Source: Salpingoeca rosetta
Lineage: Eukaryota; Protista; Choanoflagellata
DNA length: 43,619 nucleotides
Reading direction: 5' to 3'
Assembly: GCA_033442325.1 (NCBI GenBank)
Contig: JAWQFM010000007.1
Span: forward strand, 529,968-573,586
A program made the translations under genes and the position numbers. The notes under the pieces were generated by a model. It was not told where the DNA came from and searched no databases. It saw only the letters and a program-made list of their open reading frames with translations. This document shows positions 1 to 41,587 of this stretch, piece after piece. Position 1 is the first letter of the stretch. Each line of letters starts with the position of its first letter.

Positions 1-2010
1 ATCACCCCGGGCTCAGCCCCGTTGCCGACAACCCGCACCGTCCCCGCGCGCAAGCGTCCGCAGCCGAACCTCCCGTCCAACCCCAAGCTCCATCCGCGTC
101 AGGTCCTCAAACACAGCGCTCACAAACACAGACGCCCGCTGGCCCTCAAAGTCAAGCACGTCCCGCTCAACCACAACAGTCGCCTCCGCGCTCGACCCAG
201 GGTCATTGCCAAGCTCGCTCATGCCGCCGCTCACGCGCACCGCGCTCGCAACAACAACGTCCAGCCCAACAATCCCAACGTAGCTGTCCTGCGCCTCAAG
301 CATCGCCTCGCCGATAACGCGGGACCCGCTCACCGCGGCGCTCAATACGCGCACCACCGTCTGCCCAGCGCCAACGCCCTGCACGTGCCCAGACACAACA
401 GGGTCAACCCGTGCCACGCTCTGGTTCACAACCGCAAGCTGCGACTGCCCCAGCAGCCCGCCCAGGCTCAGCGCTGCGCTCACAGCGTCCCCGCTCCGGA
501 ACCGCCCAACAACGCTCACGCGCGCCCGCTGGAACTGGCTTGTCCCCAGCGACACGCACCCGTCAGACGCATCGTGCCCAGCGTCGCGCTGCCACCGCGC
601 CACCCGCCGCACAACGTCCCGGTCAAGCACTACCTGCACCGGCTCCTCAGGGTACCACACGCGCACCCACACCCGCGCGGACTGCCCGCCATACTCAACG
701 CTCACGCCCACAGACGGCGACCCGCCGCTCTCGGCGCCCGTCACGCGCACGCGCCCGCAGTCAGCATCCGCCAGCAACACGCTCGTGTTCAGGCTCATGC
801 ACGCCAGCCCAGGGCTCCCCGCAGACACAACTGCAAACTGCCCAGGCCGCCAGCTGCTCACAGCACGCACAGAGAGCGCAGACGTCTCCTCGCTCCCGCT
901 CAGCACAGCCGTGTTCACAAGCTCAGCGCGCGCCGCGCTCGCAACAAGCCCAACCACTCGCTCAGGCTCCACAACAACAAATCCGTTGCCGTCACGCGCA
1001 AGCCCGTCGGTAGACCCGTAAGCCCCGCCTCGCCGCACAATCACAGTTGCAGGCTCCGCTCCGCCGCCAACAAGCAGCGGCCGCCGGTCAATGTCGCTCA
1101 GGTACACAGCCCGCACAGACACAAGCGGCTGCACTGCAGCGCTCGTCCCCGCGCCGTCCCGTACCCGCACCACAACCGTCGCAACCGCCTGCTCCTCCGT
1201 TTGTGCATCCTGCGACGCTGTCTTCGGGTCCCTCAGAATGTAGCTCCCAGTCGCGTTCCGCCCATCAGCCGTCACGCCGTACTGGCCCGTCCACACATCC
1301 TCGTCAACCTCAAACCGCACAAGCTCAAGCTCGGGCCCAACAAACAGGCTCGTGCGGAACGTGTTGATCGCACGCTCCGCCTGCACACTGAGTGACACCT
1401 CAAACTCGTCGCCGCTCTTCAGTGATGCCTGCGGCACCCGCGCAATCAGCAAGCCGTTGCTTCCGCTCGGGTCAAACGCGCTCTCGGGCCGCACCAGCAG
1501 CACCTCAGACACGCGCCCCGCGTCCTGGAACCCAGCCGTCAGCGCATACTCCACGCTCACATTCAGCGCGCCGCTGCCGTCGTCCCCGCCGCCGTTCTGG
1601 CTCGCATCAACCGCCGCAGCGTCAGTCACCCACGCCTCAGGCACATCCACAGACGCAATGCACGCGCCCGTCCCGCTGTCCGTGCTGCACGTTCCACTCG
1701 GCATGCTCGTGTCAACCTCCTGCTGCAGCGTCGCCCCGCCAACAAGCCGCACATGCACCGTCGTGCTGCTCGTCCGCGTGCTCCCGCGCGCATCCCGCAC
1801 CTGCACCGCAACGTACACCCTCCGCGAGTCCGGCCACACCTCCCCGGTCAGCAGCTGCGCCTCAACGCTGCTCGCTCCAGCGCGCCCGCGCGAGTACCCC
1901 AGCGATGCAGACAGCGACGCAGCCATCGCGCCAGCGCCCTCGCCCTGGTCAAGCTCAACAGAAACAGACGTGCTCCCGCCAGGCGCCAGGCCCGCTGGGA
2001 AGCCATATCG
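1..2010. repeat. Copy 2 (partial) of a 4938-bp intragenic tandem repeat; near-identical to 4940-6948
   Basis: The same ORF translations recur at offset 4938 (411/5349, 785/5723, 1047/5985). The only differences noticed are a synonymous SNP at 1393/6331 and a 1-nt insertion near 46. Confidence 0.95.
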
Positions 2011-5000
2011 AAACGTCCCGCTCGCGTCCGTGTCGCCACTCGTCACAGGGCTGTCCAGCGAAAGCACAACCCCGCCACTCTGGCCAACGCTTGCCAGCCA
2101 TTCGTCCTCGCTCGTCGTCGGCATCGTAGCGTTGCCGCCCGCACCCGCGCCGTCGCCCACAACCGCAAACGCGCCGCTGCCCTGGGGAACAACGTCCCCG
2201 ACTATCACAGCGCTGCCCGCGGCAATCGCATAGTCCCGGCAATACGTGTTGTTCGACAGCGTGCAAACGCCATCCAGCACCTGCCCGCCAGGACACGGAA
2301 CCACAGCACACAGTCCACTCGCAAGCTTGCAGCTCACGCTGTCAACCGTGTTGTCAAACGTCTGCAGCGGGTTGTACCCTTGTGGCACAGGTGTCTTCAC
2401 AGCCACATCGTCCCCGCCAAACGCGCCAAGCGTAACACTCACCTGGCCCGTGTACGCCTTGGAGCCCTGCGTCCGTCCGCCCATAAACACAAACAGCGCT
2501 TCCGGCGTGTCGCGCGTCACCTGGATCACGCTCAGCCCAATGTCCGTGCGAACCGTCGATACAGGCACGCTCACGCGCCACAGCCCCACGCTCGCATTCA
2601 CAAGCTCAGCCTCAACAATCGCTCCGCTCAGCGTGCCAGACCCTTTGCTCAGCGTCACAAACCGGCCCTCACTGAACACAGACGCGCTCGTGCTCAGCTC
2701 AAGCCCAAGGCTGCTCTCCCCGCTTGTCAAGCCAGCAGGCACGCTGCCGCCCTCAAGGTCAAAGTACACCCGCGTATCAGCGCCAGACGCTGCGCCGTCC
2801 CCCTTATCCAGGAGCACAGCGCTCACCTCAAGCTCACACGCCGTGCCGCTGCTCACAGCCTGCACACCAACACCCGTCACAAACCGCAGCAGCCCAAAGT
2901 TGACCCGGTTCAGGAACGCCGCATCGTCCTCGTTCCGCTCCGTGTTCAGGTCCGCGTCAAGCTCATCGTACGTGTACGGCTTGCTCGCATGCAGCGCAAG
3001 CACAGCCTGCCCACGCGCAGACACAAACTTGAGCTCCTTCTCAACAAGGTACGTCAGCACAAACCGCACATCGCTCACGCCAAACACGCCGTCGCCGTTC
3101 GTGTCGCCCCGCTGAGGTGCCCCCGTGTTGCGGCGCATCCGTCGCCGCGCTTCCGCGTGCGCTTCAACGGCCTCGTCAACCGCAGTTGCCCCAAGCAAAG
3201 CGCCCTGCTTCCCGCTGCCGCTGCCGCTGCCGCTGCTGCTGCTACGGCGGCGGCGCGTGCTCGTCGCCTCAAACGGTACGCGGCCAGCAATAAACGCACG
3301 CTCAGTCCCGCTGCCAATCGCCGTCCCGCTCACATCAGGCTGGCTCAGCGTCACAACAGTCCCACTCAGCACGCTCGACCCGGCACCCACAACACGGAAC
3401 TCAAGCTCAGCAACCTCAAGCGCGCTGCCAGACACACTGTCCCCAGACACTGTCCCGCCAAACTCAACTCGCCCCGCCGTCTGCGCGTTCCGGTCAAACA
3501 GCCCGTTCACACTCGCCGTCGCAGACACAAACTCAAGCACCGTCGTATCAAACATCACCGCAAGCTCGTACGCCCCAAGCGCTGCGCCGCCAGTGTTCAC
3601 GCGCACGGGAACCGTCACCGTCTCGCCCACCCTCAGTGGGCCCACGGCAACCCCGCTCGCAGACCCAATGTCCGCATCCCCAACCTCAGGATCAAGGTTG
3701 CACGCAACACCAACCGTCCCGCGCACCGCACTCCCGCCGCTGCGCCCATCGTCAACAGTCGCCGTCAGCGTCACAACATCTGCCGCGTTGCCTTCCAGGC
3801 GAACTACCCCGCTCCGCGCTCCGATGCTCGCGCCGCTCAGGTCGCTGCTCGAAAACACAACAAGCCCGGGATACAGCGCCTGGCCCCCAGAGAACAGCGT
3901 CGGCAGCACACGCCCGCTGTCAAGCACAGCTCGCATGTCCACCGTCGTCTCCGCGCCAACGCTCCCGCGCAGCGTGCTCCCAGCTGCAACACTAACGCCC
4001 TCCAGCGCAGCCACAACCGCAGCTTCCCGCGTCACATTCACCACAAGGTCCTGCGACGCAGATGTCACGCTGCTCGCGTACTCCAGCCGCAGCTGCACAA
4101 CAAGCGATCCGCTTGTGTTCGTACCGTTCAGCACAGCGCGCCCAGCACTGCTCGTCCCCACGCTCACGTGGTTCTGTGCGGTGCCGCTGCCGCTGCCCGT
4201 CACGCGCGAGATGTCAACAACAGCCTGTCCGCTCACGTCCGACACAAGCGCCCCGCCCTCAAACAGCTGAGCCGACTCCTGTCGCACAGCAAGCGCGCCC
4301 GCCGTCGACACCTCAATCTCCTGTCCGTTGCTCAGCGCAAGATACGCCCGCACCACAAGCGCCTCGTACACCGCCGGCGTCGTCCCAGCAAGCCGGTGCA
4401 GCGTCCGAACAGACACCCCGCTCGACCCGCTGTACGCAGGGTACGGGTTCGCGTCCGCCCGCACACCAACGCCCGCAACAACCGTCACAGACACAGTCGC
4501 GCTCACGTTCTCGTGCATGAAGCTCACCCGGATCACCGCAACAGACCCGGCGCCAAGCTCCCCGGCCTTGCTCGCGTTGGCCACAAGCCGCAGCCCCGTG
4601 CTTCCGCCTTCCTCAAGCGAAACCAGGCCCATCGCCCCGCTCAGGTCAATCAGCGTCCGGTTGTCCTGCGTCGCCGTCACAACACGGTCAGGGTACTCCA
4701 GCTCAACCGTCAGCTCCGCGCTCGTCGCAACGCCAGCAGTCTCAGCCGCGTCCCCCGCAAACGTCAGCCGGCTCGCAGACACCGTCGCCCGCGCTGCATC
4801 AGCAGGTGGCAGTGCAACGCTCACATACCCGCGCCCGCGCACAACCTCAAGCACGCCGCACTCCGCGTTCGCGTTGCCGCCCTGCCAAATCGCTTCAATC
4901 AACTCCCCGCTTCCATCCACCGCGCGCCCAGGCACAACAATCACCCCGGGCTCAGCCCCGTTGCCGACAACCCGCACCGTCCCCGGCGCAAGCGTCCGCA

Positions 5001-8000
5001 GCCGAACCTCCCGTCCAACCCCAAGCTCCATCCGCGTCAGGTCCTCAAACACAGCGCTCACAAACACAGACGCCCGCTGGCCCTCAAAGTCAAGCACGTC
5101 CCGCTCAACCACAACAGTCGCCTCCGCGCTCGACCCAGGGTCATTGCCAAGCTCGCTCATGCCGCCGCTCACGCGCACCGCGCTCGCAACAACAACGTCC
5201 AGCCCAACAATCCCAACGTAGCTGTCCTGCGCCTCAAGCATCGCCTCGCCGATAACGCGGGACCCGCTCACCGCGGCGCTCAATACGCGCACCACCGTCT
5301 GCCCAGCGCCAACGCCCTGCACGTGCCCAGACACAACAGGGTCAACCCGTGCCACGCTCTGGTTCACAACCGCAAGCTGCGACTGCCCCAGCAGCCCGCC
5401 CAGGCTCAGCGCTGCGCTCACAGCGTCCCCGCTCCGGAACCGCCCAACAACGCTCACGCGCGCCCGCTGGAACTGGCTTGTCCCCAGCGACACGCACCCG
5501 TCAGACGCATCGTGCCCAGCGTCGCGCTGCCACCGCGCCACCCGCCGCACAACGTCCCGGTCAAGCACTACCTGCACCGGCTCCTCAGGGTACCACACGC
5601 GCACCCACACCCGCGCGGACTGCCCGCCATACTCAACGCTCACGCCCACAGACGGCGACCCGCCGCTCTCGGCGCCCGTCACGCGCACGCGCCCGCAGTC
5701 AGCATCCGCCAGCAACACGCTCGTGTTCAGGCTCATGCACGCCAGCCCAGGGCTCCCCGCAGACACAACTGCAAACTGCCCAGGCCGCCAGCTGCTCACA
5801 GCACGCACAGAGAGCGCAGACGTCTCCTCGCTCCCGCTCAGCACAGCCGTGTTCACAAGCTCAGCGCGCGCCGCGCTCGCAACAAGCCCAACCACTCGCT
5901 CAGGCTCCACAACAACAAATCCGTTGCCGTCACGCGCAAGCCCGTCGGTAGACCCGTAAGCCCCGCCTCGCCGCACAATCACAGTTGCAGGCTCCGCTCC
6001 GCCGCCAACAAGCAGCGGCCGCCGGTCAATGTCGCTCAGGTACACAGCCCGCACAGACACAAGCGGCTGCACTGCAGCGCTCGTCCCCGCGCCGTCCCGT
6101 ACCCGCACCACAACCGTCGCAACCGCCTGCTCCTCCGTTTGTGCATCCTGCGACGCTGTCTTCGGGTCCCTCAGAATGTAGCTCCCAGTCGCGTTCCGCC
6201 CATCAGCCGTCACGCCGTACTGGCCCGTCCACACATCCTCGTCAACCTCAAACCGCACAAGCTCAAGCTCGGGCCCAACAAACAGGCTCGTGCGGAACGT
6301 GTTGATCGCACGCTCCGCCTGCACACTGAGCGACACCTCAAACTCGTCGCCGCTCTTCAGTGATGCCTGCGGCACCCGCGCAATCAGCAAGCCGTTGCTT
6401 CCGCTCGGGTCAAACGCGCTCTCGGGCCGCACCAGCAGCACCTCAGACACGCGCCCCGCGTCCTGGAACCCAGCCGTCAGCGCATACTCCACGCTCACAT
6501 TCAGCGCGCCGCTGCCGTCGTCCCCGCCGCCGTTCTGGCTCGCATCAACCGCCGCAGCGTCAGTCACCCACGCCTCAGGCACATCCACAGACGCAATGCA
6601 CGCGCCCGTCCCGCTGTCCGTGCTGCACGTTCCACTCGGCATGCTCGTGTCAACCTCCTGCTGCAGCGTCGCCCCGCCAACAAGCCGCACATGCACCGTC
6701 GTGCTGCTCGTCCGCGTGCTCCCGCGCGCATCCCGCACCTGCACCGCAACGTACACCCTCCGCGAGTCCGGCCACACCTCCCCGGTCAGCAGCTGCGCCT
6801 CAACGCTGCTCGCTCCAGCGCGCCCGCGCGAGTACCCCAGCGATGCAGACAGCGACGCAGCCATCGCGCCAGCGCCCTCGCCCTGGTCAAGCTCAACAGA
6901 AACAGACGTGCTCCCGCCAGGCGCCAGGCCCGCTGGGAAGCCATATCGGAGCGTTCCTGTGAGTTTGCTGTGCACATCTGTGTGATTTTCTGGGCTTGTT
7001 GGAATGATGCCATTGTCTACGGTGACGTGGAAGGCGCCGATGCTTGTGCTCACGTGGACAAGAGCCGATGCGTTGTATCCGACTGTGAATAATTGTGTGT
7101 GTGAGCGTTAGCATGTGATGAGAATGTAATGACGCAAGGAGTTGTAACATCGACAGGTGTACTTGGAACATGATTTAGCAATGAAAACTCGAACATTCCC
7201 ATCTCTTCATGAGTTGTACATGCATGTGTGTGCATGTGTTTGCATGTGCGTGTTCGCATGCAAGCTCGTGCGGCTCTCACCTCTACAGGTTGTGTCGGAT
7301 GTGGGTGTGCACTCCTGATCGACGAGGAAGCCAGGCTTGCACTCAGAGCAAGGGGAGCACGTGCGTTGCTTGTGCCTTGCGACGAAGCGGAGGGCTGCGA
7401 ATGTGACTTCGTTGCCGAAGAAGTTTTCCGTGTTGATGTGCGTGTCCCTGTTCTCGATGAGGAACGTGATGGGAACGAGCGCATCTGCAGTGATGGTGCT
7501 GAGGGTGTACCAGCCTGAGGAGGGGATGGTGCGCTGGTCGATTTCCAGGCTGATGGTGCGAAAAGGTGTGGTGATGGTTATGGGGACGTTGGTTGCTGCG
7601 TTTGTCTGTGCCTTGTAGGCGATTTCAACGTCATACACGCCAGGGTCGAGCATAGCGGATGCGTTGAGGTACACGTCGCCCTTGTTCTCGTCATTGTCGG
7701 TGAGGTAGGAGGCAAAGTCACCCGCCTGTTCGTTGACGCGCACCCACGGTCCCACAGCCGTGATGTGGGTGCTGTCAATGTCCAGCGTTGTGGTTGCATT
7801 GATGGCATCTGCGGCAATGTAGAGCTCACACTGCTGGGTACGATAGGAGCCATCTGGGCACTGGGCACACAAACTCTCGCACTGGCGGTCCGAGGTTGGT
7901 GTTGGTGCCATTGTCTGTATGGTGAGGTCGTGGCAGCCCGGCAAGACTGGCCGACAGTCTCTGTCTGAAGTTGGTGTTGGAGGTGTGTGCTCGTACTCGC

Positions 8001-11203: not shown

Positions 11204-14200
11204 CGTGGGCCCTTTGTCTGCATGTGTGCATGTGTATGTGTGCATGTCAGCACTTGTGCTTGTGAGTGGCACGGAGCTTTTACCTCCCCCTCCCTGCCTC
11301 TTCTCTTTGAGGCCAACGCCAGCCCATGATGATGTGTCCACTGCACGCTGTCGCTCAATTCACGCTGTCACGTCACTCACCCGCACGTGCGGCTGTCCGA
11401 TTGCGCGCATGCATGCATCGTCTCCACGCATGTGCCTGATCAGGTCCACTTTTGGATGTCCGAGATTGGTCTTCCAGCCCGCTACTTTGAGATTGTCAGC
11501 GCCGAGGACATCCTCAAGCATGTCGAGTCCCTTGCGGTATGTCCACCAGCCCCGGTGATCCCAACGGGGGCAAGGAGAGATGTGATGTCACATGTTCGAG
11601 ACGCACAGTGCAATCTCGTTTATGTGTTATGCGTGCGTGTGTGTGTGTGTGTGTGCGTGTGTGTGTGTGTGTGATCCACAGACGCAGACACAGACACAGA
11701 CGCACAGAGAGAGAGAGAGAGATCGCTTGTGTCTTGCCTCTTGCGGCGTGTGTATGCGTGGTTGCCACGAGGCTTCCCCCGACCCCTTCACTCACTCACT
11801 CACTCACTCACTCGATCGCTGCCTCGGCTGTTGTTGTTGTTGTTGTTGTTGTTTTCTTTCAGGCTGAGCTTGCCGGACAGGCCGCCTCTGGCAGCACCTT
11901 TGACATGGAAATCCGGCACGAGACGGAGACCTCTGCCCTGTATGTCGTGCCATCCTCTGTCTCCGGAAAGGACAGCGGCATGATGCGCTACAGCCTCGGC
12001 CCCGCGCAGTCCACGCCCGTGCACCGCGTTGAGAACTACATTGAGCAGACGTACGCTTGCCCTGTCGAGAAATGCCCTGTCGAGAAATGCGCGCGCGCAC
12101 AAACTGCCACTGTTTTTCGACTGAACACCCTCATACACGTTGCAATACGCACACATGCCCGTTCACACACTCATGTTAACATACATACTCACTCCTACTC
12201 ACTCACTCACTCACTCACTGGACTCACTCACTCACTCACTCATACATACAAATACACACACCAACGATGTGGCGCAGGTTCTTTTCTCGTTTCCACAACG
12301 ATGAGGACGAGCATGCTGATGTGCAAACACAGGCCCGCCGCACCCTCGTGCGCTCCCTGTCCACGGCGCAGCCCCACTCCCCAGGCTCCCCAACCCCAGG
12401 CTCCACCATCCTCGCCAACCGCCCTTTCCGCCTACAGGCGTTCCGATCCAAGTAAGAGAACACGGCTGCAACGTGCGAGCTTGCATGCATGCACCCGTAT
12501 CATCACTGACCGGTGTTGTTTGCCACAGCGGATTGTTCACAGTTAAACCTCGTGACTTCTTGCTCACCACCACAACTGATGGATGCACCCCTTGTATTGG
12601 TTTTGTTTCTCTCGCCCTCTCCACTCCTTTGCTTCTTCGTCTCCCTCGTGCGTGTTAGGGCTGCTGTGGAGGAGGCTGGCGGCGCCCACCTTCGCCTGTA
12701 CCTGCTGCAGGCGTGCGAGTTTGTCAACCCAAAGCCCGCAGACGACGAGACGCGCATTGAGGAGCTTGCAGACAAGGGCTTCCTCTCCGATGTCGACGCC
12801 AAGACCAAAGCCGCCTACCAAGTACGTCCGCGCTCATCACGCCCATTCGTGCACGTGTGTGTGTGTGCGTGTGCTTGTGTGTGTGTGCATGTGTGTGTGC
12901 ATATGTGTGCGTGTGTGTGCATGTGTGTGTGTGGTTGGTCTTCGTCTACTGGTGCAGCTTATTTCTTCATTCCTTTGCAACAACCCGACTCACCACGGCT
13001 GTTGCTTGCTTGCATGCATGTTCCATCTCCCCTGCAGGAGGTTGTGCGCAAGACCGTGGAGACGGGGGAGCCCGTGTTCCAGTTCTTCCAGGACTTTGAG
13101 GACGAGGGTCACAAGGCAACCCTGCTCCTCGTCTCCCACTTCATTGGCGACACCCACAGCTTCTTCGTCGGGTGAGTCTCACACACAGGAACACTTGTGG
13201 TGAATGCAAATTTACACATGCACACACGAGCACTCACACACACACACACACATGTACATGCACATGTACGCTCACACGGTCGTGCTATTTCTCGGTGCTT
13301 TTGCCATTCAATGACTCATCTTGAGACTGTCCGATCACCGTCGCCACCTGCTTTGTGTTCTAGTATGCCTGCCGTGTACCGCCACTACTACATGTTTGCT
13401 CACACCAAATACGTCGAGATGTTCAGCAACGGCATCGTACGTCGCGTGTGCATGCTTGCTTGTGTGCTGAGCGTGTGAGAACATACACATAAGCATGTGT
13501 GTGCCGTTTGTTTGGCATTGTGGCTCTGTACCGGTCTGATTTGACGGTTCCGCGCCCCTCCCTATGCGTATCATGCATGCTTTTTTCTCCCAATCCACAC
13601 ACTCAAGCTCACACACTCGTCTTTCACACTCACGCACTCTCTCACTCACCCGCGCGCGCACACACACAAATACACACACACACACTCACACACACTCACA
13701 CACACACACACGCTTACGCGCGCACGCGTTGACGCTGGCAGATTGTGTTTGCCTTCTACCTGAACCCGCTGAGCGTGATTCGGCAGCCGGACGGGTCGAC
13801 GGTCGAGCCCTCCTCCAAGCTCGTCTCCCGCATGGCCCACATGGAGCAGGACGCCTCCCTGCACTTTGTCCTGCCCAAGCACAGCTTCACCCCGCTGCTC
13901 ACCAGCGGCAAGCTCAGCGTGCAGGAGACGACGTACGCTTACTGCGCCGCCAAGTTTGCCTTCCACTTCCTCAACCGCGGCGAACGGGACCACCGCGAGG
14001 TTGCCCTTGCCCTGCAGTCGTCCGAAGCGCTGGCTGCGCTCTCCCGCCTTCGCGCCGCCTTCCGTATGCACGCCTTCAACGAGGGCTTCATCGTGGATGC
14101 CGTCATCACCAACAAGCAGCTCATCTCCGTGCTGTACGACGACTTTGCTGCGCGCCACATGCCAAGCTTCATGCACCGTCGCTCCCGCGTCATCAGCTCG

Positions 14201-15059
14201 TCCAACCCCGAGACTGGCGGTCCGTTGTTCTCCTGGTGCCCCTGCCTGCGTGTCGTGCTCAGCTGTCTGTCTTGTGCGCTGGTGTGATTCGATTGTCTGT
14301 TTGTGTGATGTTTGACATCGTGTGCGTGCATCTGTCGTCCCAAGAAAGGCTCATCACTTTCTCACCTTGTTCATTCCTCGCCCTTCGTTCCTGCCTTTGT
14401 CCTGCCTCGTTTCCTCCCTTGCTTGCAGGCACGATGGAGCGTGAGAGCGGCAAGGAGCGCCTGCTGCAGCTCGTGCGCGAGTCGTGCAAGACAGAGGGCG
14501 AGCGCACCGTGTTTGAGGCCTTTGTCACCTTCAACACGTCCATCCTCAAGACCAACTACTACAAGCCCTCCAAGCGCGCCATTTCCTTCCGCCTGGAGCC
14601 GTCCATCCTCTCCTCCAACGCCTTCACAGAGCGCCCCTTTGGCGTCTTTATGATTGTGGGCGCCGAGTTCCGAGGGTTCCACGTGCGCTTCCGCGACGTT
14701 GCGCGTGGTGGCATTCGCCTGGTGCGTTCCCGCTACCCGCAGGCGTACAACAACAACGTCTCTGCGCTCTTTGACGAGTGCTTCAACCTGGCGAGCACGC
14801 AGCAGCGCAAAAACAAGGACATTCCCGAGGGCGGATCCAAGGGCGTCATCCTGCTGGGCTGGAAGTACCAGGACAAGGGCCAGGTTGCCTTCCGCAAGTT
14901 TGTCGACGCCGTACTCGACTGCATGATCCCCGACGAGCAGTACATGATCGACCACTACGGCAAGGAGGAGCTTCTCTTCCTCGGCCCAGACGAGGGCACA
15001 GCTGACTTTATGGACTGGTGCGTTTCTGAACACGGTCGTGGTGGTGTGTAATGTGTGGG

Positions 15060-15108
<49 letters not shown>

Positions 15109-15942
15109 AGTGGTGGTGAAGGTGACGATGATGTGTGGGTGGGTGCGTGTGCTTGCACGTGTGTTGTTCCTTTGCATTCGCGTTCCTCGACTGTTCTTGT
15201 CCTCACAACTTCATGCCCACAAAACACACACACACACACACACAACTGTTATGTTCGCTTGTTCTCGCGTATGCAGGGCGAGCCTTCACGCCCGCAAGCG
15301 CGGGTACAAGTACTGGAAGGCGTTTACCACGGGCAAGGGCACGTCTCTCGGCGGCATTCCGCACGACACGTATGGCATGACCACAAACTCCGTGCGCGCG
15401 TACGTGGAGGGCATCCAGGAGCAGCTTGGCCTCGACCCAAAGAAGTGCACCAAGATGCAGACTGGCGGGCCCGATGGTGACCTTGGCTCCAACGAGATCA
15501 AGATGGGCCTGGAGAAGACGGTGGCCATCGTCGACGGCAGCGGCGTTGCCTACGACCCGGAGGGCCTGGACAAGGAGGAGCTCACCTCGCTCGCCACGCG
15601 CCGCATCATGGTCAGCAACTTCAACAAGGACAAGTTCTCGCCGCAGGGCTTCTTTGTCAACGTGGAGGAGTCAGACTGCCCGCTGCCGGACGGTTCCACC
15701 GTGCCGAGCGGCCTTGACTTCCGCAACGTGTTCCACCTCAACCCCATGGTGCACGTGGACTTTTTCGTGCCCTGTGGTGGCCGCCCTGCGGCTGTCAGCA
15801 CGGAGAACTACAAGGCGTTCCTGTACGACAACGACGGTCGCCTGCGTGTCAAGTACATTGTTGAGGGCGCCAACCTGTTCTTCACGCAGGAGGCGCGCCT
15901 CAAGATTGAGGAGGCAGGTGTCATCCTCATCAAGGACGCAAG

Positions 15943-15992
<50 letters not shown>

Positions 15993-17128
15993 TTGTGCTT
16001 GCAACACGCTTTGCAATGATGCGCAGCAACCCAACCCCACGCCTGAATTATTTTTCTCTTGTGTTCTCTTCTCAGCACACACGCGAACGCTCACGTTGAC
16101 GCTTTTCTCGTTCCCTCGCACACGCACCCACACAAATCCACCCATCCAATGTCCCTGGGTGCAGCGCCAACAAGGGTGGCGTGACGTCCTCCAGCCTCGA
16201 GGTGCTTGCCGCCCTCTGCCTCACAGGTACGCGCGCGCTTTGACTTTGGAAATCGGTTTTGTCCCCATCACTCGAATGCTTTTCCGTGGAACGGACACCA
16301 GCCAGCCCCGCCGCTCTGCTATTGCTCACCGTTCTTCTTGCTTCCTTTCCCTTGCCTCTTCTCCTCTCTCCGCTCTCCCCTCTCTTGTCTTCGCTTTCCC
16401 ATTGCTCTTTGCCATTCTCAGATGAGGAGTTTGTGGAGCACATGGCAATTGCTGGCGATGTTGTGCCAGAGCTGTACCAGACGTATGTCAAGGAGGTGCA
16501 GGGCATCATCAACAACAACGCCAAGCTTGAGTTCAAGTGCATGTGGGAGCACCACAAGGCCACCAACGAGCCCATGTCCATCATCAGCGATCTGCTCAGC
16601 AACAAGATTGTGCACCTGCGTGACGCCATTCTCGCCAGCGAGCGCATATGGACAAACCAGACACTCAAGACCAACGTAAGGGCTGCCTGCACATTTCCGT
16701 GTTGTTGTTGTTGTTGTTGTTGTCGTTGTCGTTGTTGTTTAAGTTGTCGTTGTTGTTGTTTAAGTTGTCGTTGTTGTTGTTGTTGTTGTTGCCGTCGTGC
16801 AGCCGAAACCCGTGTTGCCTGCTACTTTCACAGCCCATCCAAACCTCCACTCTCGCTCACACTGTCCCTCGTTGCCGCACCGCAACATCTGCTTAAATCC
16901 ATCTCGCTCCCCCTCTATTCCCGGCACTCGGAACCACAGATTCTGAAGCGGGCGATTCCCAAGACGCTTCAAGAGTTCCGTCCACTGGACGTGCTCACGT
17001 CCCGCCTGCCGGCCGTGTACCTGAAGACGCTCTTTGCCTCGTACCTCTCCAGCCGCTTTGTCTACTCGCAGGGTCTGCTTGCGTCCGACCTTGCCTTCTT
17101 CGAATACGTGCAGGAGCTGTCTGCCTGA
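10971..17128 (+). CDS. GDH2: NAD-specific glutamate dehydrogenase, large fungal/protist type (~1052 aa, 13 exons)
   Basis: Exons 10971-11066, 11444-11536, 11863-12050, 12278-12451, 12659-12821, 13038-13171, 13364-13436, 13742-14219, 14429-15017, 15277-15942, 16165-16226, 16422-16675, 16940-17128; all GT-AG, in phase, 3159 nt. Motifs: FRGFHVRFRDVARGGIRLV, QQRKNKDIPEGGSKG, LFLGPDEGTA, FTTGK..LGGIPHD.YGMT, QTGGPDGDLGSNEI, FVPCGGRP, IVEGANLF, SANKGGVTSSSLEVL. Confidence 0.95.
11130..11201. repeat. (TG)n intronic microsatellite, representative of many in the window
   Basis: Visible in GDH2 intron 1. Similar tracts at ~9700, 15950, 37680, 38070 and 39160. Confidence 0.95.
15061..15108. repeat. (GAT)n intronic microsatellite
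   Basis: Visible in GDH2 intron 9. Confidence 0.9.
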
Positions 17129-17819: not shown

Positions 17820-19439
17820 CTAGAAATGGGTTGAAGCATAACGAGGATGAGCACTTTGCCGCTGACTATGTGGCTGGCGTTGTCGGCGTTGTGGATGGTG
17901 GAGCGGACGGTGATTGCGAGCATGTTGACGGTCATCCGGCGTGCCAGGTAACAGCTCAAAGCTCGCGTGTTCACTGCTGTTATCACCACCGTTGACGTCG
18001 TGTTCGTATGGAAGGAGCTTGCTTCGGTGGCGGCGGCGCTGTGCACTGTCCACGCTCACACCGATGAACGAACCAAGTTTTGGATCCCCAAACGCAACGA
18101 GGGCGGGTGGCGTATTGTCGAACCCATCATCGACAGCTTCGCCACTGCCAACCAAGGCACTGCCCACCCTGTTCTTGTTCGGTGCCTCGCGCAGCAGCAC
18201 GGGACTGGCTACAAGGGCCACAGTGGAGCCGTCAGGGCGTGTCAGCACCACATGGCTTGTGCTTGTGGCCGACTGCTGGGGGTGCAGAGACGGGGACAAG
18301 GCGAGGGTGCCACTGTTATGGTCATGGGTGGTGGTGTAGCGACGATAATGGTGGCTGTGTGAGGGCGGCGACGACGCTGAGAAGTGGGATTGGTGCAGGA
18401 AGGCCGGGTCAGACTTGGTCCATCCCATGTCACTGGGCACAATCAACACCTCCCGCTTCTTTCGCCTGCACCATCGACGTGAACGAGTTTGATGGGCCAT
18501 GGGTGGCGTGTACGTGTCCGTGAGAAACGATTATGTTCCAGCACACACCCACACACTCCCTCGCTCATGGTACTCACTCACAAAACCGGCTGCGCGCGTA
18601 GTCACCACACACACAACCACACATATCCGCACACCCACACACAACCACACATATCCGCGCACGGACACCCGACACACACACACACCCACACACACCCACA
18701 CACATACATACAAACACACCTTGCCAGAAGTATAATGGCCACAATCAGTGCAATGATCAGTGCCAGAATCAGCACCAAGGTCACCCAAGTAAAAGTGGTC
18801 TCCCCTGCGGAGCTTGGGAATGCCGTGGATCTGGATGACGCAGTCATCGTTGATGTCGTGGACGAAAAGTGCAGTGGTCTCGTGGGTCCTGCGAAGCCAG
18901 CACACCTCACAGTCGATGCCTGGTGTTGTGGCAGGAAGGCGCGACACAATACGACACAGCATCATGGATGATGAGGGGCATTCTCGACTACCACACACTC
19001 GAAAGGGCGTGACACGTGACAGGAATGAATGCTAGTCAACGTGTTGGGTTGGCACGCACCTGATGAAGGCTCAGCGCCAAACACAGTCCATCCGGTAAAT
19101 TCGAGATCGCGCTGATGGAGGGCGATGTCATGTTTCCTCTCTCCTGCGGGTCCTCAGAGGCCTCGAGTACAACGTACAACACTGTAGCGCGCACGCACAA
19201 GAACATACAAAGAGACAAATTATTAGCCACAGCGCAAGTACATGCAGGCATCCGTTCCAAGATCACAGCACACCACAAAGATACCACAAACAAAACACAA
19301 AGAACAGTAATGATGACAGACATGGCGCGCTTTTTTTTTCTGGTTATCTATCATACATGCGGGCGAAAATTATGCACGCGCACATTTACGAGCACATGCT
19401 CTCATCTACACACGAGCACTGGACACACTCACTCACTCA

Positions 19440-19480
<41 letters not shown>

Positions 19481-22400
19481 TCTCTCTCACCCACCCACTC
19501 ACTCACTCACTCACTCACTCACTCACAGACTTGCGCCCACCCAAGCACATGCCTTGAGCCGTACCAGTGGACAGCGACACATTGTTGGCGACGTGGCTGC
19601 ACGTGAGATTCGTCAGTGCAAGGCTGTGCACGGGAACGCTGGTGCTGTTGCTGATGCTCAACAGCACCAGTTCAGCAACAGCGTCGAGGGCGTCGCACGA
19701 CATGTTCCCAGCACGCTCACGCGCCAGCTGTAAGGTCAGAGGCACTCGCTGAAACGACGTCCAGTTGCGTTGGCCGCAAGCCCCACACCAAGCGAGGCGT
19801 GGCCCCGATGTGTCTGAGCCCGGGGCACCATCAGACCCGGTCTCATCACCATACACGCGCAGCGTCTCTGCAGAGGCAACAAGCAAGTGCGGTGCTGTTG
19901 CTGCTGGCACGTGTGGTGGAGCTGGCACTGCTGGTGGTGGCGATGCACCACACAGGCTGCCACCGACGTTGTGCAGCGGCGGAAGCAGGGGGTGTGCGCA
20001 AACGCCCGACAATAAGGAAGGCGCATGTGCAACGCGGTACCCATCCAGCCACAGCCCAGCTCCAAAGTCTGGGCCAATGGTGACGGCAATGTGAAACCAC
20101 AGCGTTCCCACATGTGGCGCAGACGCCAGATGAAAGACGAGCGTCTGTGAGACGTGACGTGTTGGGGCTGACGTGTCTTGCAAGATAGCATCAAACAGGC
20201 TTGCTCCAACGGCTGGGGTGCGGCCGTCATGAATGCGCACTGCCTCGTGAAACACAACCCGCTTTGTTTCGACGTCCAGCGTGAGCCGCGCAGCCGTATC
20301 CCAACGCGAGCGGTTCAAGGAGGTGCAAGATCCACCGAACAGCGCCAGCTGTAACGCCCCGCTCGACGCTGTGGCCATGCCCCCAAGGACAGGAAGAATG
20401 CGGGCTGAATATGAAGGCATAGCTGGGACTTGGGTGCTTTGCACTACTGGAACAGTCACCTTCGCCCACATGCCAAATGCACGGATTGTAGCAGCGACAG
20501 CAGAAGAGGCAGCAAGCTCTGGCGTTGCGGTGAGGGCCGTGTTTGGAGATAAGACAACATACGGCTGCCCAACAGAAAACGGATTCACAGTTGACGTTGA
20601 CGCGTTCTGCAGCAGCAACGTCGTGTCAATGCGCTGCACAACCAGCGAAGACGTGTGACGTGCAATCGACGGGCCCGTCGTGCTGTCACGCGTGCTGAAC
20701 GAGCGCAGGAAAGCGGGCGCGAGGGTGCCTGCAGCCAACGGCAGCAGCTGCTCTGGTGGCACAACTTGCACACCCACAGCAGAAGACCGGGTGGGGAGCT
20801 GGACTCGTTCGTCCCCGCGTTCACCGAGTGGGACGCTCGCCCACGTTACTCTGTCCTCAAGTGCATCGTCGATGACAGCAAACGCTGCCGTGCTCAGCGG
20901 TAAGGGAGCAGTGTCCGTCCGCAGGCGCACGCACACAGCAAAGTGCTGCAACTGCGCCCGTGTCTGCACCAGCGACGCTGACGCCAAAGACACAGCACGC
21001 GCGCGTGCAACGATCCCTGATCGGGTGAAGGTGACAAACCCGCTCACGGTGGACGCAGTCAACATGGCAGCGTACGTTTCTGAGGTTGACAGCACGGCAA
21101 AGACAGCCACGCCATCACCAGCGCTCGCGGCGGTGTCAATCGACAGCGTCGTCGTTATGACCAGCGCGTGCGTGTACATTCCGCGTCCACAGCTGTGCTC
21201 AACAGCTGGCAGAGCACGCCTGCGCCGTGATGATGCCTGTGGCGCGAGCGCAATGAGCTCAGCGCCCACGATGAGCGGGCGGTCTTGTGTGATGGCGTCT
21301 GTCACATCAGCGACCACGGCCAGTGATGGGGCCTCGGTTCGCCCCTGCACCAGCGGTAGCCGTAACCCGCACATGCCAGCAAAAAACGATGGATGGAAGT
21401 GCCAGCAAAGAAACGCTGCAACATCTGCACCGTCACGCCGACAGCTGCGACCAGAGCCCGTGGTGCTGGTTGTGCTGCTGCTGCTACTACTGTTGCTACC
21501 GGTGTGCTCGTTCACGTCCAGCACGCACCGTGTCATTGTTTGCCCGCTGTCGCCAGCTTGCGATACTGCACGCCTTTGTCGTTGATGCGGCTGCTGGTGG
21601 TGGGTTTGTTGCTGTGGATTCGCAGCTGAGGACGACACCAGTCGAATTGGCAGCGAAGTCGACACGAGGTCCTGTCGAAATAAGGCAGACGCACTCATGC
21701 TGCTGCTGGTATTGTTGTCTGAATCCAGTGGTTGTGAGCGCACAATGTCCACAGATACATGCGCGGAGACTGCAGTGAATTCTGATGGTGATGGTTGTGG
21801 CTGTTCAGCACTGGCGAATGCAAGTCCCAGAACCCGAACCAGCCCCGCGCGAGGGGCAGCAGCAAGCACGAGCACGGCTTCCACTCGCCCAGCTGCGTTG
21901 CACTGTGTCATGTTCCTTGACCGATATATGAGCGGTATGCCCTCAGCCTCACCACCCGTCGCATCGCACCACCACGTATGGCGTACGGGTTGCATGCTGC
22001 CAGGTGGTACAAACACTTCAACAAGTTGAAGTGACGCTGGGTCGAAGGCTACGGAAGCCGAGTACACTGCGCCGACAGCCGCACTCAGGCTTGGCTGTTC
22101 AAACGCCAACACCATGCCTAACGTCGACGGTGGCGGTGGTGGTGGTACTGGTGCTGTTGTTGTCGGTGGTGGCGCTGTCGTTGCTGTTGTCGTTGCTGTT
22201 GTGGTTGCTGCTGGGGGCGGTGTTGTTGAAGACGACAAGACGGCGGCAGATGCAGGCCAGGGACCGAGATTGCCCCCGCCCCCACCGCCGCCAGCAGGCA
22301 CATCAGTGCCGTCACCGCTGCCGTTCATTTCTTCAGCTGCAGTTGTTCCAGGGGACAAGGGAATGGAGGTGGATGGGAGAAGCCACGTGGGACGAAAGAG

Positions 22401-23250
22401 GCGATGGGGTGCAAATACGGCAAGTGGCAGGCGGGCAAACGTGCCAACAGCACTGGGCGGTGTGGGCGACACCATCTCGTTCGCAGCGACAACAGCAATG
22501 GTGATGATCGGGTACAAGTGTGCAGAGATTGGCGGCGGCAAGCGCAGGGCTGCCGTTTGCGTGTCGCTTGAGACCAGCAAGTACATCTGATCCTCTGCCC
22601 TGTATGGGCGCAGCGCCAGCCCAAGTGCGGGCTGCAGGGCGCGGATGCTGGCAGTGATGTGCGTGCCGTCCGAGAACATAGCCGTCGCCAAGGGCAGAGG
22701 AAGCGGCTTTGGCTCTCCAACGTCAGCGACAAAGGCAAGTGTAGTGTCACCCAAGTGAGGCTGCAGGTGCACAAGTGTCGTTGGTCCTGCAATGGTGGAT
22801 GGCTCAGGAACGACCTGCACATCAGCGACAACAGCGGACGAGCTTGCGCCTGTCATGCGAACACTGATCACAACTGACTGTTGCTGCTGAAATGAGCCAC
22901 CAGTGTGGGTGAGGAGGAGCGCGTCAGGTAATGTTGACTGGGGCGATGGCGTCGATGCAGGAACAGAGGCGGTGCCGGGTGCTGTCGTTGCAGTATCCTG
23001 CGAGAGCGGCGTGGACGTGATGGAGAGAACGCTGGATGCAACGGACACATCCAAGTTGGACATGGGCAGCGCAACGCACCCTTGCTGTTGTGGGTCACAA
23101 TTGCCCGCAAGCAAGCAATCGTCATTGGCGCTGGTGTTGCTTGCGGCAACGACGCACGCGACCACACGCAAGAGCACTGGTCGTAACCGCATGTCCGGGG
23201 ATGCCTGCGGTTGTGAAGAAGGAACTGCAACCACAGGCCACTGAAACAAT

Positions 23251-23286
<36 letters not shown>

Positions 23287-25352
23287 TGAGCGAGAGGAGG
23301 GTTCAGCTGGCTGAGCGGGATGTGTGGTGGCAAGGGCAATGCCCAGGACACTGACAAGTGCGGCACGACTTGCGTGTACACGCTGTCAAGACGAGCGGAA
23401 GCCGTATGCACGCCTTCAGCTGTGTGCAGCTCAAATGTCATGGTGATGTCGCCTGCACACGGCAGCATCGCAGAAACGCGGGCAACCGTTGTTGGCGTGA
23501 TGGTCCTCGCGGCTGTGGATGAGGCGACGTGGTCCATGACGGAGGGGAATTGCTGGGGGTTGTCGGTCGTGTCCAAACCCTCGCCGTTTGCACCACTGCC
23601 CTCAAGCTCAACGTGCACTGCATCAGCGCAAGCGCCGTTTACTGCGGTGATAATGACGGAGTTGATGTTGGGAAGCGTGGCGTTTGCAAACAAGCACGTC
23701 TCCTCTTCCACCCGCACAACGTCTCGTGCCAGCGCAGGTGGTGCAACTCCGATTGTGCGCGCGGATGACTCGAGTGTCAAGTGCTGACGCAACGGAGGCG
23801 TTGGTGTGGCTGCTTGTGTGGATGCGGTTGCATTTGTGTTGATGGGGGTGGTCGTCGGTGTTGTGAAATTGGCGGCACCGCTGCTGCTGCTGCTGCTGCT
23901 GCTGTCTGCGCTTGCTGTTTGTACATAGATGGTGCGAGCTGTCAGCAGCAGTGTCTGCGCGGGATCGCTGGTGGTGCTGGTCAAGTGCACGAGCAAGCGC
24001 GCGCGGACGGTGGCACCAACATCTGCAGGTGGTGGTGGTGGTGGTGGTTGTGGTGAAGCCTCAGGGGCGATGGCGACGGCAAGCGGAAGACCCACGCTGG
24101 ACGTGGAGGGTGCCAGCACCAAATGGGGCATGGGCTCCACTGCGTCGGACACAGTCAAGGTCAAGCGAAGACGATGAGACGGCAGCAAGCGCGCCGGCTC
24201 AGCACCGACACGCGCCACCACAAACACAACATACTGCATGCGAGGCACGAGCGTTGATGTTGCCGTCGTAAGGCCGGCTGCGATGGTGGCCAGCGCGGCT
24301 GTTCGCGGCTGCTGTTGCTGCTGCTGATTGTCCTCGAGGGGGCATTCACCGTTGGATGACGATGCTCCCGGAAGCAAGCAGGCGCGAAGTGCGGCTTGCG
24401 TCGTGCCCAGTGCTGGAAAGGCAACGGCAGTGATTGTACTTGGTACTTGGGGCTGGGATGGGCGTAGTTGCAGATGCAGAGCGGCAAGTGACTGTGATTG
24501 GGAATCATTCGGTGCGGAGGGCAATGTCACCTGCACCTCAGGCGTTCCCGAGTGCTGCAGGAAAGAGTCATTGAGTGCTAGCACCGCATCGGCCCCTGTT
24601 TGCATCGTGATGGTGGCGCTGGTTGCTGGAAATATGCGCAATAACGGCAACACGTCTTCCGTGATATCACAGGGTACTGCACGGAAGCTCTCTGTGTCAG
24701 TGTCTTTGCTGCCGTCGTTGCTGTTGCTGTCATCTTTGCTGCTGTCGTTGCTGCTGTCGTTGCTGCTGCTGCTGTTGTTGTTGTTGTTGTTGCTCCTGTG
24801 GTGGCTGCTGCTGAGCTGCGGAAAAGTGGCTTCCACCCACACGGGGATCACCGGCCACACCATTTGCTGAAAATCCAACGTCTCAAGCAGTAGCGGGTGT
24901 GCTGCTGCGACTGCTGCTGCTGTCCCAGTGGTGTGGTTGCTTGCAGCGTCCATGCCACCACCGGTGGCATTGAGAGGGCTGGGTGAGGGTGTGCGGATGG
25001 CGACGTGCACGGGCTGGACAACGCGTACGGTGACGGCGGCTCGTGCCAGGTCACCTTGCAACACAGATGCAGCGACAGTGGATGAGTTGCGCACACGGAT
25101 GGTGGCGTTGATGGTGCCCCCGAACCCGACTGGAATGCGCAACTGCAAACACGACTGCGTTTCGTCTGTGTAAGTCGTGTTGCATGGTGGGGCCGACGCC
25201 ACATGCGCGCTGGTGTCGCGGCATGCTGTGATGGCACAGGAGAGCGGAATCGCTGCAGCACCGGCAGTGTCGAGATGACGCCTCAGGATTGGCAGCGACG
25301 AGTCATCGTCATCATCATCGTCATCACCAACAGCTTCATCATCATCATCATT

Positions 25353-25386
<34 letters not shown>

Positions 25387-27701
25387 GCATCAGCATCAAC
25401 AGCAGCAGCATCATCATCGTGAACAGCAGGAGCAGCATCATCTCTGTTTGTGCTGTTGGAGAGGATAATGTGCCACTGCGACTGCACATGATCAAAGGCA
25501 ACAAAACACGATGCACCGTCTGCCTCGCTCCAGATGTGAACTCGCACAGCGAGAAGGATGGGTGGATCGCTGCTCCCCGTGATGCTGCTGATGGACTGGA
25601 CGTATGGTGACCCCAGCACATGCGCGTGAAAGTGCAGTGGAACCAGTGGCTGAGTCTGTTGGCGTGCGACAAACAGCGGAGCGGAACGCGCTGCTGCGCC
25701 GCCAAGCTGTACCAGTGTTGGTGAAGCTGAACCAGCATTTGGTCTGGGTGCTGCTGCTGCTTCATGAGACAGGATATCGAGAAGGGTCACATGAGCGATG
25801 GAGAGCGGCGATGGTGGTGTTGCGGGGGAAAGGGATGACACGTTGGTGTCAATGGTGACGAACTGCACACGTTGTTGATGTGACCGCCACCGCTCAAGGT
25901 GGAGGTACAGGGTAACAGCTGGTGTTGCAGATGACAGCATGGCGGTTGCGGTGTGCGAGCACACGTCAGCGTCTGTTGTGCCTGTGATATTTTGCAGAGG
26001 GGGAGGGAGGTCGCTCATGACACGGCGCCTGCGTTGCTGCGGCGTCAAGTCTGTCCATGCAGCAACACCAAAGAAGGCGCGAAAGGCGGACGCTGCCTGG
26101 GCAACAACAGGTGACGCGCCCCAACAGCCAGCTGATGCGTGCACACGCACGAGGACAGCGCCACCTCCAGTGAGGGCCAATACGCCTGTACGTGACAGAT
26201 TGAGGCGAACAGTTATGCTGCCTCTGCCTCCTCCTGCTTCTAGTTTGCGTTGCGTCACGGCAACAACAGATGGGTGCGGTGCAGTGGCGCTGGCGGTGGA
26301 TCCAAGTACCGCTTCTGGATGGAGGAGGGCAGCCCGGATGTCCTGAGACTGCGCGCACCAGAGCTGTAGCGGTGTCACGTCCACGGTGACGTTGAGATGC
26401 ACACCAGCAATACGAGGTGATGCTGTGGGGCTGGTCGACGTGGTGGTGGTGGTGGCTGTGTACGACGGAGACGGGAGGTGAAGCGCCCAGTGCGCAGAAA
26501 ACGGCGTAAAGGCGGTTGTCGTGGCCGTGCCGACAATAGCATGTGGTGTGCATGGGGGCGCGCCGCTTTGCACCGTGAGCGAGCAGTCCACGCGCCGAGA
26601 TGATGATGATACGGGACGTGCGCGTGGCAATTGGAATGCTGGCGCACATGTTGCTCGCAGGCACGTTGTGTCGGACGTAGGATCGCATAGGACCACGGCG
26701 GGCAGCGAGGTGCTGTTTGTGAGTGCGAGGAGCGCGGGCGCAACGACGAGGCTGAATGCCAGGCGGACATGATCTTGCGACGTCTGAAGGATGCGCACGG
26801 CAGGGTCCACGAGTTGCACCTGCGCGGTGTTGCTATTGCTTTCATTCTTGGCATTGGCAGAGCTGGAAGGTGGAAGCTTGGCAAGGGTGCTTGCGAGCTG
26901 ATGGCGCTGGCGCTGTCCAACGTAAGCCAAGGGAACGTCGCCGATTGCCAGCGACACGGTGGTGGAAGAAGAAGCAGACGAAAGTGATGAAGACGAAGAC
27001 GAAGAGGACGGAAACGAAGACGAAGACGAAGGAAAGAGGGCGTCGGGGTCTGAGATGATGATGGTGGTGGGTCGAAGGGTGAGGCGATTTCCGGGAACAA
27101 AGACTGATGGGTTCGTCACCGCCATTGGGAGCCTCTTGCGCCGCTTCAAGGCGGCGAAGCGATCCTCTTTTGGTCCCGTGGAGGTCGAGGAGGAGGCCCC
27201 GGGTGTGCATGGTGCCGCTGCTGAAGGCGGTTGCGGAGAGTGTGTGGCCGAGGAGAGCAGCTCCTGGATGGAGAGCAGGTCTTGGCGAGGCCAGGTTGTG
27301 TGCAGCGTGGCAGGGAGGTATTGCAGTGTTGATTCATAGTCGCTGGTGACGCAGATGGCTGTTGAAGAGCAGAAGCCGAAGCCGGCCGACGCGGTGTGGC
27401 AGAGATCGTTCACTGGGGCGGGCCCAACAGGGGCGCAGGTGTCATCCGGCATGCACAGGCCGCGCACGCACGATCTCCATGTACACGGGGAGAAGGCAGG
27501 CCTGCCTGCGCATTGTGCTGCGGCAGAAGCTGCGCTTGCGATTGGTGATGCTGGGAGGATGGCCAGGAAGAGCAGGAGGGAGCCTACAACGTAGCCTGCT
27601 GCAACTGTGACAAACCCACCAGCAGGCACCACGGCCACCAGCACCACAGCTGTTCGCCGTTCATCGCTGCCGCTTCTTGCTCCTGTTAAGGAGCAGGCCA
27701 T
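17820..27701 (-). CDS. Very large (~3030 aa) single-pass membrane protein: diverged TMEM132-like ectodomain, cohesin-like/RxRR/dockerin-like segment, LamG-like domain, TM helix, disordered cytoplasmic tail
   Basis: Exons 27701-19565, 19181-19060, 18919-18720, 18465-17820 (GT-AG, in phase, 9105 nt). Hydrophobic N-terminal leader (YVVGSLLLFLAILPASPIASA). TM segment WVTLVLILALIIALIVAIILLA is followed after splicing by RRKKR. LWFHIAVTIG...LWLDG is LamG-like. C-terminus is ...YASTHF*. Confidence 0.75.
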
Positions 27702-28166
27702 TGAGTGAGGGCTTGAAGCGCAGGGAGGCGCTGGGTGGGTAGATTGCGTGTTTGGGTGTTTGGGTGTTTGGGTGGTTGGCTGTTGTGTTCGGTTGGTTGT
27801 GGGTGTAGAGGTTGGCGAGGTCGCGAAGCACAACAGCAGCGGTGGAGCGAGCTGCTTGCAGGCAAGCAAACAACAGCCGTGTTGAGATGCGCATTTGCGA
27901 CACCACAAACTGTGGTGAAACCAAGGGGCACAATTCGCCGCTTTGTGTGTTGTTCTCGACGACCACTGGCTGGCGCAACTCGACGACCCTCTCCAGCCCC
28001 TTGTGCTTTGTGCTTTGTTGTTGTGTGTGGTTGCAGCCACGCACTTCTGCACTTGTCACATCAAACACTGCTGTGCCACTGCTTGATAAGTGAGCATTTT
28101 TTTCCCAAAGCACCCTTCCTCTCCTCCTTCTCTCTCCCCATCTCACCACCGCTCCCACCCCTCGCG
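27702..28166. promoter_or_regulatory. Short divergent intergenic region (putative bidirectional promoter) between the TMEM132-like membrane protein and the GREB1-like gene
   Basis: Head-to-head ATGs at 27701(-) and 28167(+) with 465 bp between them. Confidence 0.45.
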
Positions 28167-40980: not shown

Positions 40981-41059
<79 letters not shown>

Positions 41060-41060
41060 A
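40981..41060. repeat. (CAA)n microsatellite
   Basis: Directly visible perfect trinucleotide run. Confidence 0.95.
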
Positions 41061-41587
41061 CAAACAAACAAAACACACACACACACACACTGGCTGGCTG
41101 CTGGGGTTTTCTCAGCAAAGTTTCTTCCCCCATTTAACCAATCACCTGCGACAAGACAGAAGACACGCCCATCTGTCGAAAGTTTGCCAATTACAAAGCG
41201 GCAAGCGGGAGCGGCATTGACAGATTATCGTCAACGCGCCATTCACAGCCACGCCCCCTTTACCAACATTTTACCACCTGTCTTTCGGTTGGAGGTACGC
41301 CACTGCCTTTGCACAAAAGCCAAAGCTCGAGCTGTCGAGCTTTGTCAGGTATTGTTGTGGTGTCCCATTCTAGCATTCTGAGCTTTCTGTGCATTGTGTG
41401 TCAAATCATGTCACATCAACACGTTGCCTTTCATCTTTACTCAAGGACCTAAGGACACAAGGCACATGCAGAACCACAGTGCAGCAGCAGTAGCGGTAAG
41501 TTTAACACACGCCTACACAACAACACAGGCAACCAGGGTGCTTCTGTGCGGCCCGCCAACTGCAGCGCGCACTCGCACAACGCACAA

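Follow-up and report, generated by a model that had tools for sequence, protein, structure and literature searches.

A predicted cohesin-type domain with no recognisable dockerin in a giant, probably membrane-anchored protein of Salpingoeca rosetta

The window analysed here is a stretch of 43,619 nucleotides from the choanoflagellate Salpingoeca rosetta (assembly GCA_033442325.1, contig JAWQFM010000007.1, or C7:529968-573586 of the 55.4 Mb in 68 contigs in which our genome searches were made). Its minus strand carries an open reading frame (ORF) of 2845 codons at 19515-28052, referred to as gene 3, which we take to be genuine on account of its length at 60% G+C. The region 21180-22125 of this ORF had been described in an initial annotation as a degenerate repeat of an arrangement seen in a polyprotein encoded elsewhere on the minus strand of the window (gene 1, ORF 13-7053), with a cohesin-like domain, RxRR sites and remnant dockerin-like loops. 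In the polyprotein and its relatives this arrangement runs cohesin / RRRRS / linker / RxRRA / dockerin and is called the cassette below. Our analysis suggests with moderate confidence that gene 3 encodes a lineage-specific giant surface glycoprotein bearing a cohesin-only, decayed relative of this cut-and-clasp cassette, which is probably cut by a convertase after the cohesin with its N-terminal fragment either shed or weakly retained.

All of the peptide strings quoted for the region are present on the minus strand where they had been placed and in one frame, and together they span residues 1975-2291. An exhaustive search with residues 1975-2845 against 1.84 billion representatives returned one relative, P0001 (expectation value (E) 2.9e-8), a 274-residue fragment on two 1.2 kb metagenome contigs with 59% G+C that is 35% identical to gene 3 across the cohesin-like domain and retains its F-D-P motif together with R-H-x-W-W-C and M-x-x-C-N-x-A-G-R-V. 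AlphaFold2 run on gene 3 residues 1975-2345 from a two-sequence alignment predicts a sandwich of 9-10 strands over model residues 1-167, with a predicted local distance difference test score (pLDDT) of 60-83 across the first 130 residues and of less than 50, with no helices, after that. With P0001 as the target the same sandwich is predicted at pLDDT 63-89, its tail again unstructured, and a nine-stranded jelly roll of the kind that defines the Cohesin domain can be traced in both models at moderate confidence. When both models were compared with the PDB using Foldseek nearly all of the matches were cohesins (E 4e-3 to 0.1, probabilities of the cohesin matches 0.9-1.0). VIA-align, which is independent of Foldseek and covered 48,161 chains, placed cohesins in the first five positions for gene 3 (Z 9.1-8.3) and in the first seven for P0001 (Z 9.2-7.9), with 110-119 of ~140 residues aligned at a root-mean-square deviation (rmsd) of ~3 Å. 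Within the cohesin part hhalign and HMMER align a single segment to the cassette cohesins, the hallmark strand pair, and given the agreement of two search methods and two targets together with this pair a cohesin-type fold is the best reading of residues 1975-2141, one that we hold with fair confidence. The initial annotation had made its case depend on a cohesin fold in 22125-21640 and this is where the models predict one.

The predicted domain is divergent. The first canonical strand, where the cassettes have an invariant CNL..GDVDLG motif, is missing and a Pro/Thr-rich linker stands in its place, and structural alignments with bacterial chains begin at their residue 11-18. A Ser/Asn-rich loop precedes the last strand. 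An internal repeat search found no second copy of the domain within gene 3. Upstream, at 26013-26200 (residues 617-680, before ..QQRRRR/V), a weak alignment to the last cohesin strands and first cut site of the cassette was seen, which at -3.6 bits against the cassette profile is not significant.

The placing of RxRR sites after the cohesin was borne out. Gene 3 contains four R-x-[KR]-R sites where 0.38 are expected from its composition (P = 0.0004, 5000 shuffles). RQRR/A lies 16 residues past the last cohesin strand in a Gln/His-rich linker of low model confidence, and SRRRR/A follows 118 residues beyond it, both sites being in low-pLDDT linkers rich in Gln, His and Ser. By motif this is what is expected of a proprotein-convertase substrate, namely R-x-[KR]-R in a segment exposed to the lumen or the cell exterior. 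P domains of proprotein convertases (PF01483) number at least three to four in the genome, and convertase cleavage of gene 3 appears plausible. PF01483 scores above its cut-off at four loci (C1:1688627-1688833, C9:1065765-1066019, C13:164974-165258 and C17:91974-92321), whose products could be the enzymes that act on the RxRR sites of gene 3 and of the cassette proteins.

Membrane anchoring, also proposed initially, is very probable, the candidate helix being found in a phase-compatible downstream exon. The large ORF is ended by a GTGAGT donor at 19526, with the frame still open one codon before it, so that exon 1 would comprise ~2725 codons encoding an ectodomain rich in Ser, Thr, Pro and Ala. 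The segment with the highest hydropathy of the ORF, at residues 135-166, reads as a signal peptide or signal anchor. A putative exon 2 encodes a 23-residue hydrophobic membrane helix (18790-18722) and a putative exon 3 continues with the stop-transfer sequence RRKKRE and an open frame for a cytoplasmic tail of ~214 amino acids. This three-exon model was built from sequence alone on the basis of reading phase across the junctions, as checked by script. On the strength of the N-terminal hydrophobic segment, the exon 2 helix and the exon 3 tail gene 3 probably encodes a type I membrane protein, of ~3,000 residues if the model is correct, with a signal sequence, a huge Ser/Thr/Pro-rich ectodomain and the predicted cohesin-like domain ~750 residues outside the membrane. 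No Pfam family matched any of six pieces of gene 3, the exon 3 tail or P0001.

Both putative introns carry microsatellites at or just inside their donor end (19426-19526 and 18603-18719), namely (CACT)n in ~26 copies and (CA)n with a 10-28 nt repeat. On the coding strand these read as GTGA/GT repeats and the first intron therefore opens with many potential GTGAGT donors in a row. The coding sequence also contains long repeats, of trinucleotides and of 12-42 nt units (25303-25442, 23252-23288 and 24701-24813), which encode a poly-Asp tract (residues ~880-915), a stretch of poly-Gln and stretches rich in Ser and Asn.

The initial annotation had regarded gene 3 as a diverged paralog of gene 1, for which neither the cassette nor its flanks provided support in BLASTP, hidden Markov model (HMM) or hhalign comparisons. 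Gene 1 matches the TMEM132 immunoglobulin (Ig) domains of Pfam, matches Cohesin at 35 bits and carries a dockerin; its cassette as a query gave 21 matches in the genome and a 14-member profile gave 23 (E <=2e-11), pointing to ~21 cassettes spread over many contigs. BLASTP of gene 3 or of its region against gene 1 gave a best E of about 1. An hhalign comparison of gene 3, alone or with P0001, with the cassettes aligned 19-29 columns at a probability of <=1.5%. These columns fall on the F-D-P-x-x-L-x-x-V-x-V strand pair in one block and on RQRRA with CVLDVNE in another. Gene 3 was matched neither by profiles of the 500 residues flanking the cassettes on each side nor by a TMEM132-type cohesin profile derived from gene 1 (p = 0.26 for gene 3 and 0.39 for P0001), and no TMEM132-like Ig/cohesin module was found in gene 3 with Pfam or with the gene 1 module profile. 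The cassette profiles were also scored against 1000 composition-preserving shuffles. With the cohesin half p was 0.06 in gene 3 and 0.001 in P0001, with the whole cassette 0.017 and 0.004 and with the dockerin half 0.14 and 0.65. It follows that any cohesin signal in the sequence is faint at best and that a dockerin signal is missing.

A number of these results weigh against a decayed cassette. One of five AlphaFold2 models was folded per job and from an alignment of two sequences, the best Z of ~9 barely exceeds the background of 7-8 stated for VIA-align, and Gram-positive pilin domains reach Z ~8, within one unit of the cohesins; given this background and these pilins the structural call is moderate and not strong. 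Pfam Cohesin (PF00963, gathering score 24.1 bits) has no match in gene 3 or P0001 at E up to 10. The 14-cassette profile did not recover gene 3 in a genome-wide search at E up to 10, and with filters off the cassette HMM scores -17.5 bits for the whole and ~0-3 bits for the segment, compared with 44-89 bits per half for held-out divergent cassettes. As no sequence homology is significant, descent from the cassette rests on fold and position. Cleavage at RQRR/A is inferred from the motif, and the exon model from sequence.

These points would be accommodated if the domain were a generic cohesin- or pilin-like sandwich without cassette ancestry, its RxRR sites ordinary maturation sites and the likeness in order and in the supposed dockerin a matter of chance. 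The lack of significant similarity to the cassettes by any method, the proximity of pilin-type domains, the weak DUF7933/DUF11 leads that were all the ESM Atlas returned, the unlike flanks and the remoteness of two multibasic sites, out of four, from any cohesin-like domain are all in keeping with this. A sequence search of the PDB with the two-sequence profile likewise gave nothing at E up to 10. We nevertheless consider such an origin unlikely, as the Foldseek lists are nearly pure cohesin, the segment that does align is the hallmark F-D-P..L..V.V motif, the cassette cohesin profile outscores shuffles for P0001 where the TMEM132-type profile fails to do so for either protein, and a multibasic site lies directly past the last strand as it does in every cassette.

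The similarity in order to the polyprotein, which had been stated initially, holds in part. A cohesin followed by a cut site is common to both, but in all true cassettes the two cut sites both lie between cohesin and dockerin, whereas the second site of gene 3 comes after the supposed dockerin and not before it. The remnant dockerin-like loops themselves could not be detected by motif, by profile or in the predicted structures. A dockerin (type I, PF00404-like) has two calcium (Ca) loops with Asp or Asn at positions 1, 3, 5, 9 and 12, each with a helix after it, and gene 3 does not have these. A relaxed 12-residue Ca-loop pattern found 24 of the 28 loops in 14 true cassettes and had no match in gene 3 residues 2151-2420; within gene 3 as a whole it matches trivially in the poly-Asp tract and nowhere else. 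Neither AlphaFold2 model contains dockerin helices and gene 3 has no Pfam dockerin match. A dockerin placed after SRRRR/A instead was also considered and rejected as the profile performed at chance there (p = 0.6). Taken together a dockerin in gene 3 is not supported. The one possible relic is CVLDVNE, which in the hhalign register takes positions 6-12 of Ca-loop 1 and would be half a dockerin loop at most. Positions 9 and 12 are acidic (Asp and Glu), positions 1, 3 and 5 are Gln, Met and Arg so that these ligands are absent, and the match is not significant against shuffles. An in-frame Ser/Thr-rich insertion of ~25 residues then breaks up what would be the first dockerin helix. This insertion was also considered as an intron and rejected, since the sole GT...AG interval is 91 nt long and would break the frame.

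It could be argued that the stretch after RQRR (CVLDVNE ... DVAAFLCWHF ... ADVTDAITQD) docks on the cohesin independently of Ca and so holds the cut protein together. In P0001 the place of RQRR/A is taken by a dibasic ARR/S, with an identical CVLD kept at equal distance from it, the RR-to-Cys spacings of gene 3 and gene 1 agree to within one residue, and the hhalign register sets acidic residues at loop positions 9 and 12. A working clasp of this kind is improbable, however, as both models are helix-free with pLDDT below 50 in the stretch, the dockerin profile does no better than shuffles, the Ca-loop motif is absent, the low-complexity insertion splits the would-be first helix and a cut at the second site would remove the docking stretch itself. 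P0001 is uninformative on the remainder of the supposed dockerin since beyond CVLD it cannot be aligned and may enter an intron.

Under the decayed-cassette reading the most likely history is one in which the cohesin half and one correctly placed cut site would have survived from a cassette while the dockerin half lost its Ca loops and became unrecognisable. A kexin/furin-type convertase would cut the protein in the secretory pathway and so part an N-terminal fragment of ~2,040 residues, with the cohesin at its end, from a stub in the membrane. As a working dockerin would be missing, this larger piece may then be shed or may be held by some other and weaker contact.

A more ambitious possibility is that gene 3 provides a free cohesin socket on a membrane-anchored mucin-like stalk that captures in trans the dockerins of cleaved cassette proteins, gene 1 included, in a eukaryotic cellulosome-style surface assembly, which we regard as very improbable. 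The narrower form put forward in the initial annotation, of gene 3 as an anchoring scaffoldin-like partner or nucleator for the gene 1 units in a two-gene system, fits a predicted cohesin fold with a probable anchor and no recognisable dockerin of its own lying 12.5 kb from a gene that bears one, but it can hardly be maintained when no sequence relation between the two genes is detectable, they are separated by a glutamate dehydrogenase gene on the opposite strand, every gene 1 dockerin already adjoins its own cohesin and the proximity of the two genes means little with ~21 cassettes scattered over many contigs.

Relatives of gene 3 were sought in several further searches. A profile word search returned P0001 and no other sequence, a scan of metagenome contigs found no additional relatives, and no paralogue of residues 1975-2845 was found in the genome. 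Two word-index searches (residues 1950-2450 and 2285-2845) were blank and failed to return even the protein itself, low-complexity words having probably filled the candidates; the public gene model may also be absent there or divided otherwise than as this single 8.5 kb ORF. One of the P0001 contigs (L023) ends at its 3' end in non-coding tandem copies of ~30 bp (1090-1192) with a 'catcattttcca.tcgcgggcaccgcgcgggt'-like unit, and the assembly probably broke off because of them.

The coordinates of the features discussed are collected in Table 1.

Table 1 Features of gene 3 in the order in which they are read along the minus strand, with the basis on which each was assigned
Feature	Position in window	Strand	Basis
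Exon 1 of gene 3, first ATG (MACSL...) to GTGAGT donor	19527..27701	-	ORF, donor, phase
N-terminal hydrophobic segment, aa 135-166	27555..27650	-	top hydropathy segment of ORF
Multibasic site KRRKR/L, aa 303-307	27132..27146	-	motif scan
Multibasic site RRRR/V, aa 674-677	26022..26033	-	motif scan
Divergent predicted cohesin-fold domain, aa 1975-2142	21627..22130	-	AlphaFold2, Foldseek, VIA-align
Cohesin hallmark strand pair VYSASVAFDPASLQLVEV (h-x-h-x-F-D-P-x-x-L-x-h-V-x-V)	22014..22067	-	hhalign/HMMER, kept in P0001
Convertase-type site RQRR/A, aa 2158-2161	21570..21581	-	motif scan
CVLDVNE	21507..21527	-	hhalign register E 0.089, probability <1%
Ser/Thr-rich low-complexity insertion, in frame	21444..21503	-	direct read of sequence
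Stretch initially described as dockerin-like loops	21243..21434	-	no dockerin support: motif, profile, pLDDT <50
DGADVAAFLCWHF	21396..21434	-	string quoted in the initial annotation, located
VADVTDAITQD	21282..21314	-	string quoted in the initial annotation, located
Second convertase-type site SRRRR/A, aa 2275-2279	21216..21230	-	motif scan
Putative exon 2, 200 nt	18720..18919	-	CAG acceptor at 18920, GTGTGT donor, phase fits exon 1
Putative exon 3	17820..18465	-	acceptor 18466-18467, phase-compatible frame

Between genes 1 and 3 two adjacent ORFs on the plus strand (13564-16099) match PF05088 (bacterial-type NAD-glutamate dehydrogenase catalytic domain, E 6e-9) and PF00208 (ELFV dehydrogenase, E 6.5e-29) and probably make up a single large NAD-glutamate dehydrogenase gene that an intron interrupts. 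A sharp AT-rich island lies towards the end of the window at 41001-42000, with a G+C of 0.29 compared with 0.5-0.68 elsewhere.

Taken as it is, gene 3 adds modestly to the catalogue and is not a new mechanism. A cohesin-only form that is an orphan by sequence would show that decay or re-use of the module is possible in the absence of its partner, and members that are missed by every sequence profile appear to be within reach of structure prediction. If its socket were still active, the gene 3 domain would stand out as the candidate for the trans-acting receptor of the cassette system.

Like the cassettes of the same genome gene 3 has a predicted cohesin fold in a giant surface ectodomain, the F/Y-D-x-x-x-L-x-x-V strand motif and an R-x-R-R/A site in a disordered linker past the last strand. 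It differs from them in scoring ~0-3 bits against 44-89, in lacking the CNL..GDVDLG strand, the Ca loops and the dockerin helices, in having one site between the cohesin and the supposed dockerin and the second after it, and in its unrelated flanks. Cohesin domains have been described in choanoflagellate and sponge cadherins and a cohesin homology domain in TMEM132, while dockerins are undetectable in vertebrates (Sanchez-Pulido and Ponting 2017, PMC6030884). Proteins of this TMEM132 or coherin type (PMC6030884) resemble gene 3 as holozoan type I adhesion-type membrane proteins with a cohesin-like domain and no detectable dockerin, but the TMEM132 Ig or N- and C-terminal domains were not found in gene 3 and the gene 1-derived profile does not separate it or P0001 from shuffles. 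Bacterial cohesins, both cellulosomal and non-cellulosomal (among them PDB 4UYP, 6KGC, 2VO8 and 2XDH), are like the predicted fold of gene 3 at Z 8-9 and rmsd ~3 Å. Their identity to it is 7-16%, and gene 3 differs in having no PF00963 match, a eukaryotic host, a probable membrane anchor and no known dockerin partner.

Surface proteins that are processed by convertases into heterodimers offer a further parallel, among them Notch with its S1 cleavage and similar receptors that are cut and then held together. Gene 3 differs in that its cut is predicted and no holding module has been identified in it. It is like them in that its multibasic site falls in the juxtamembrane third of the ectodomain, a position that predicts a large extracellular fragment and a membrane stub.

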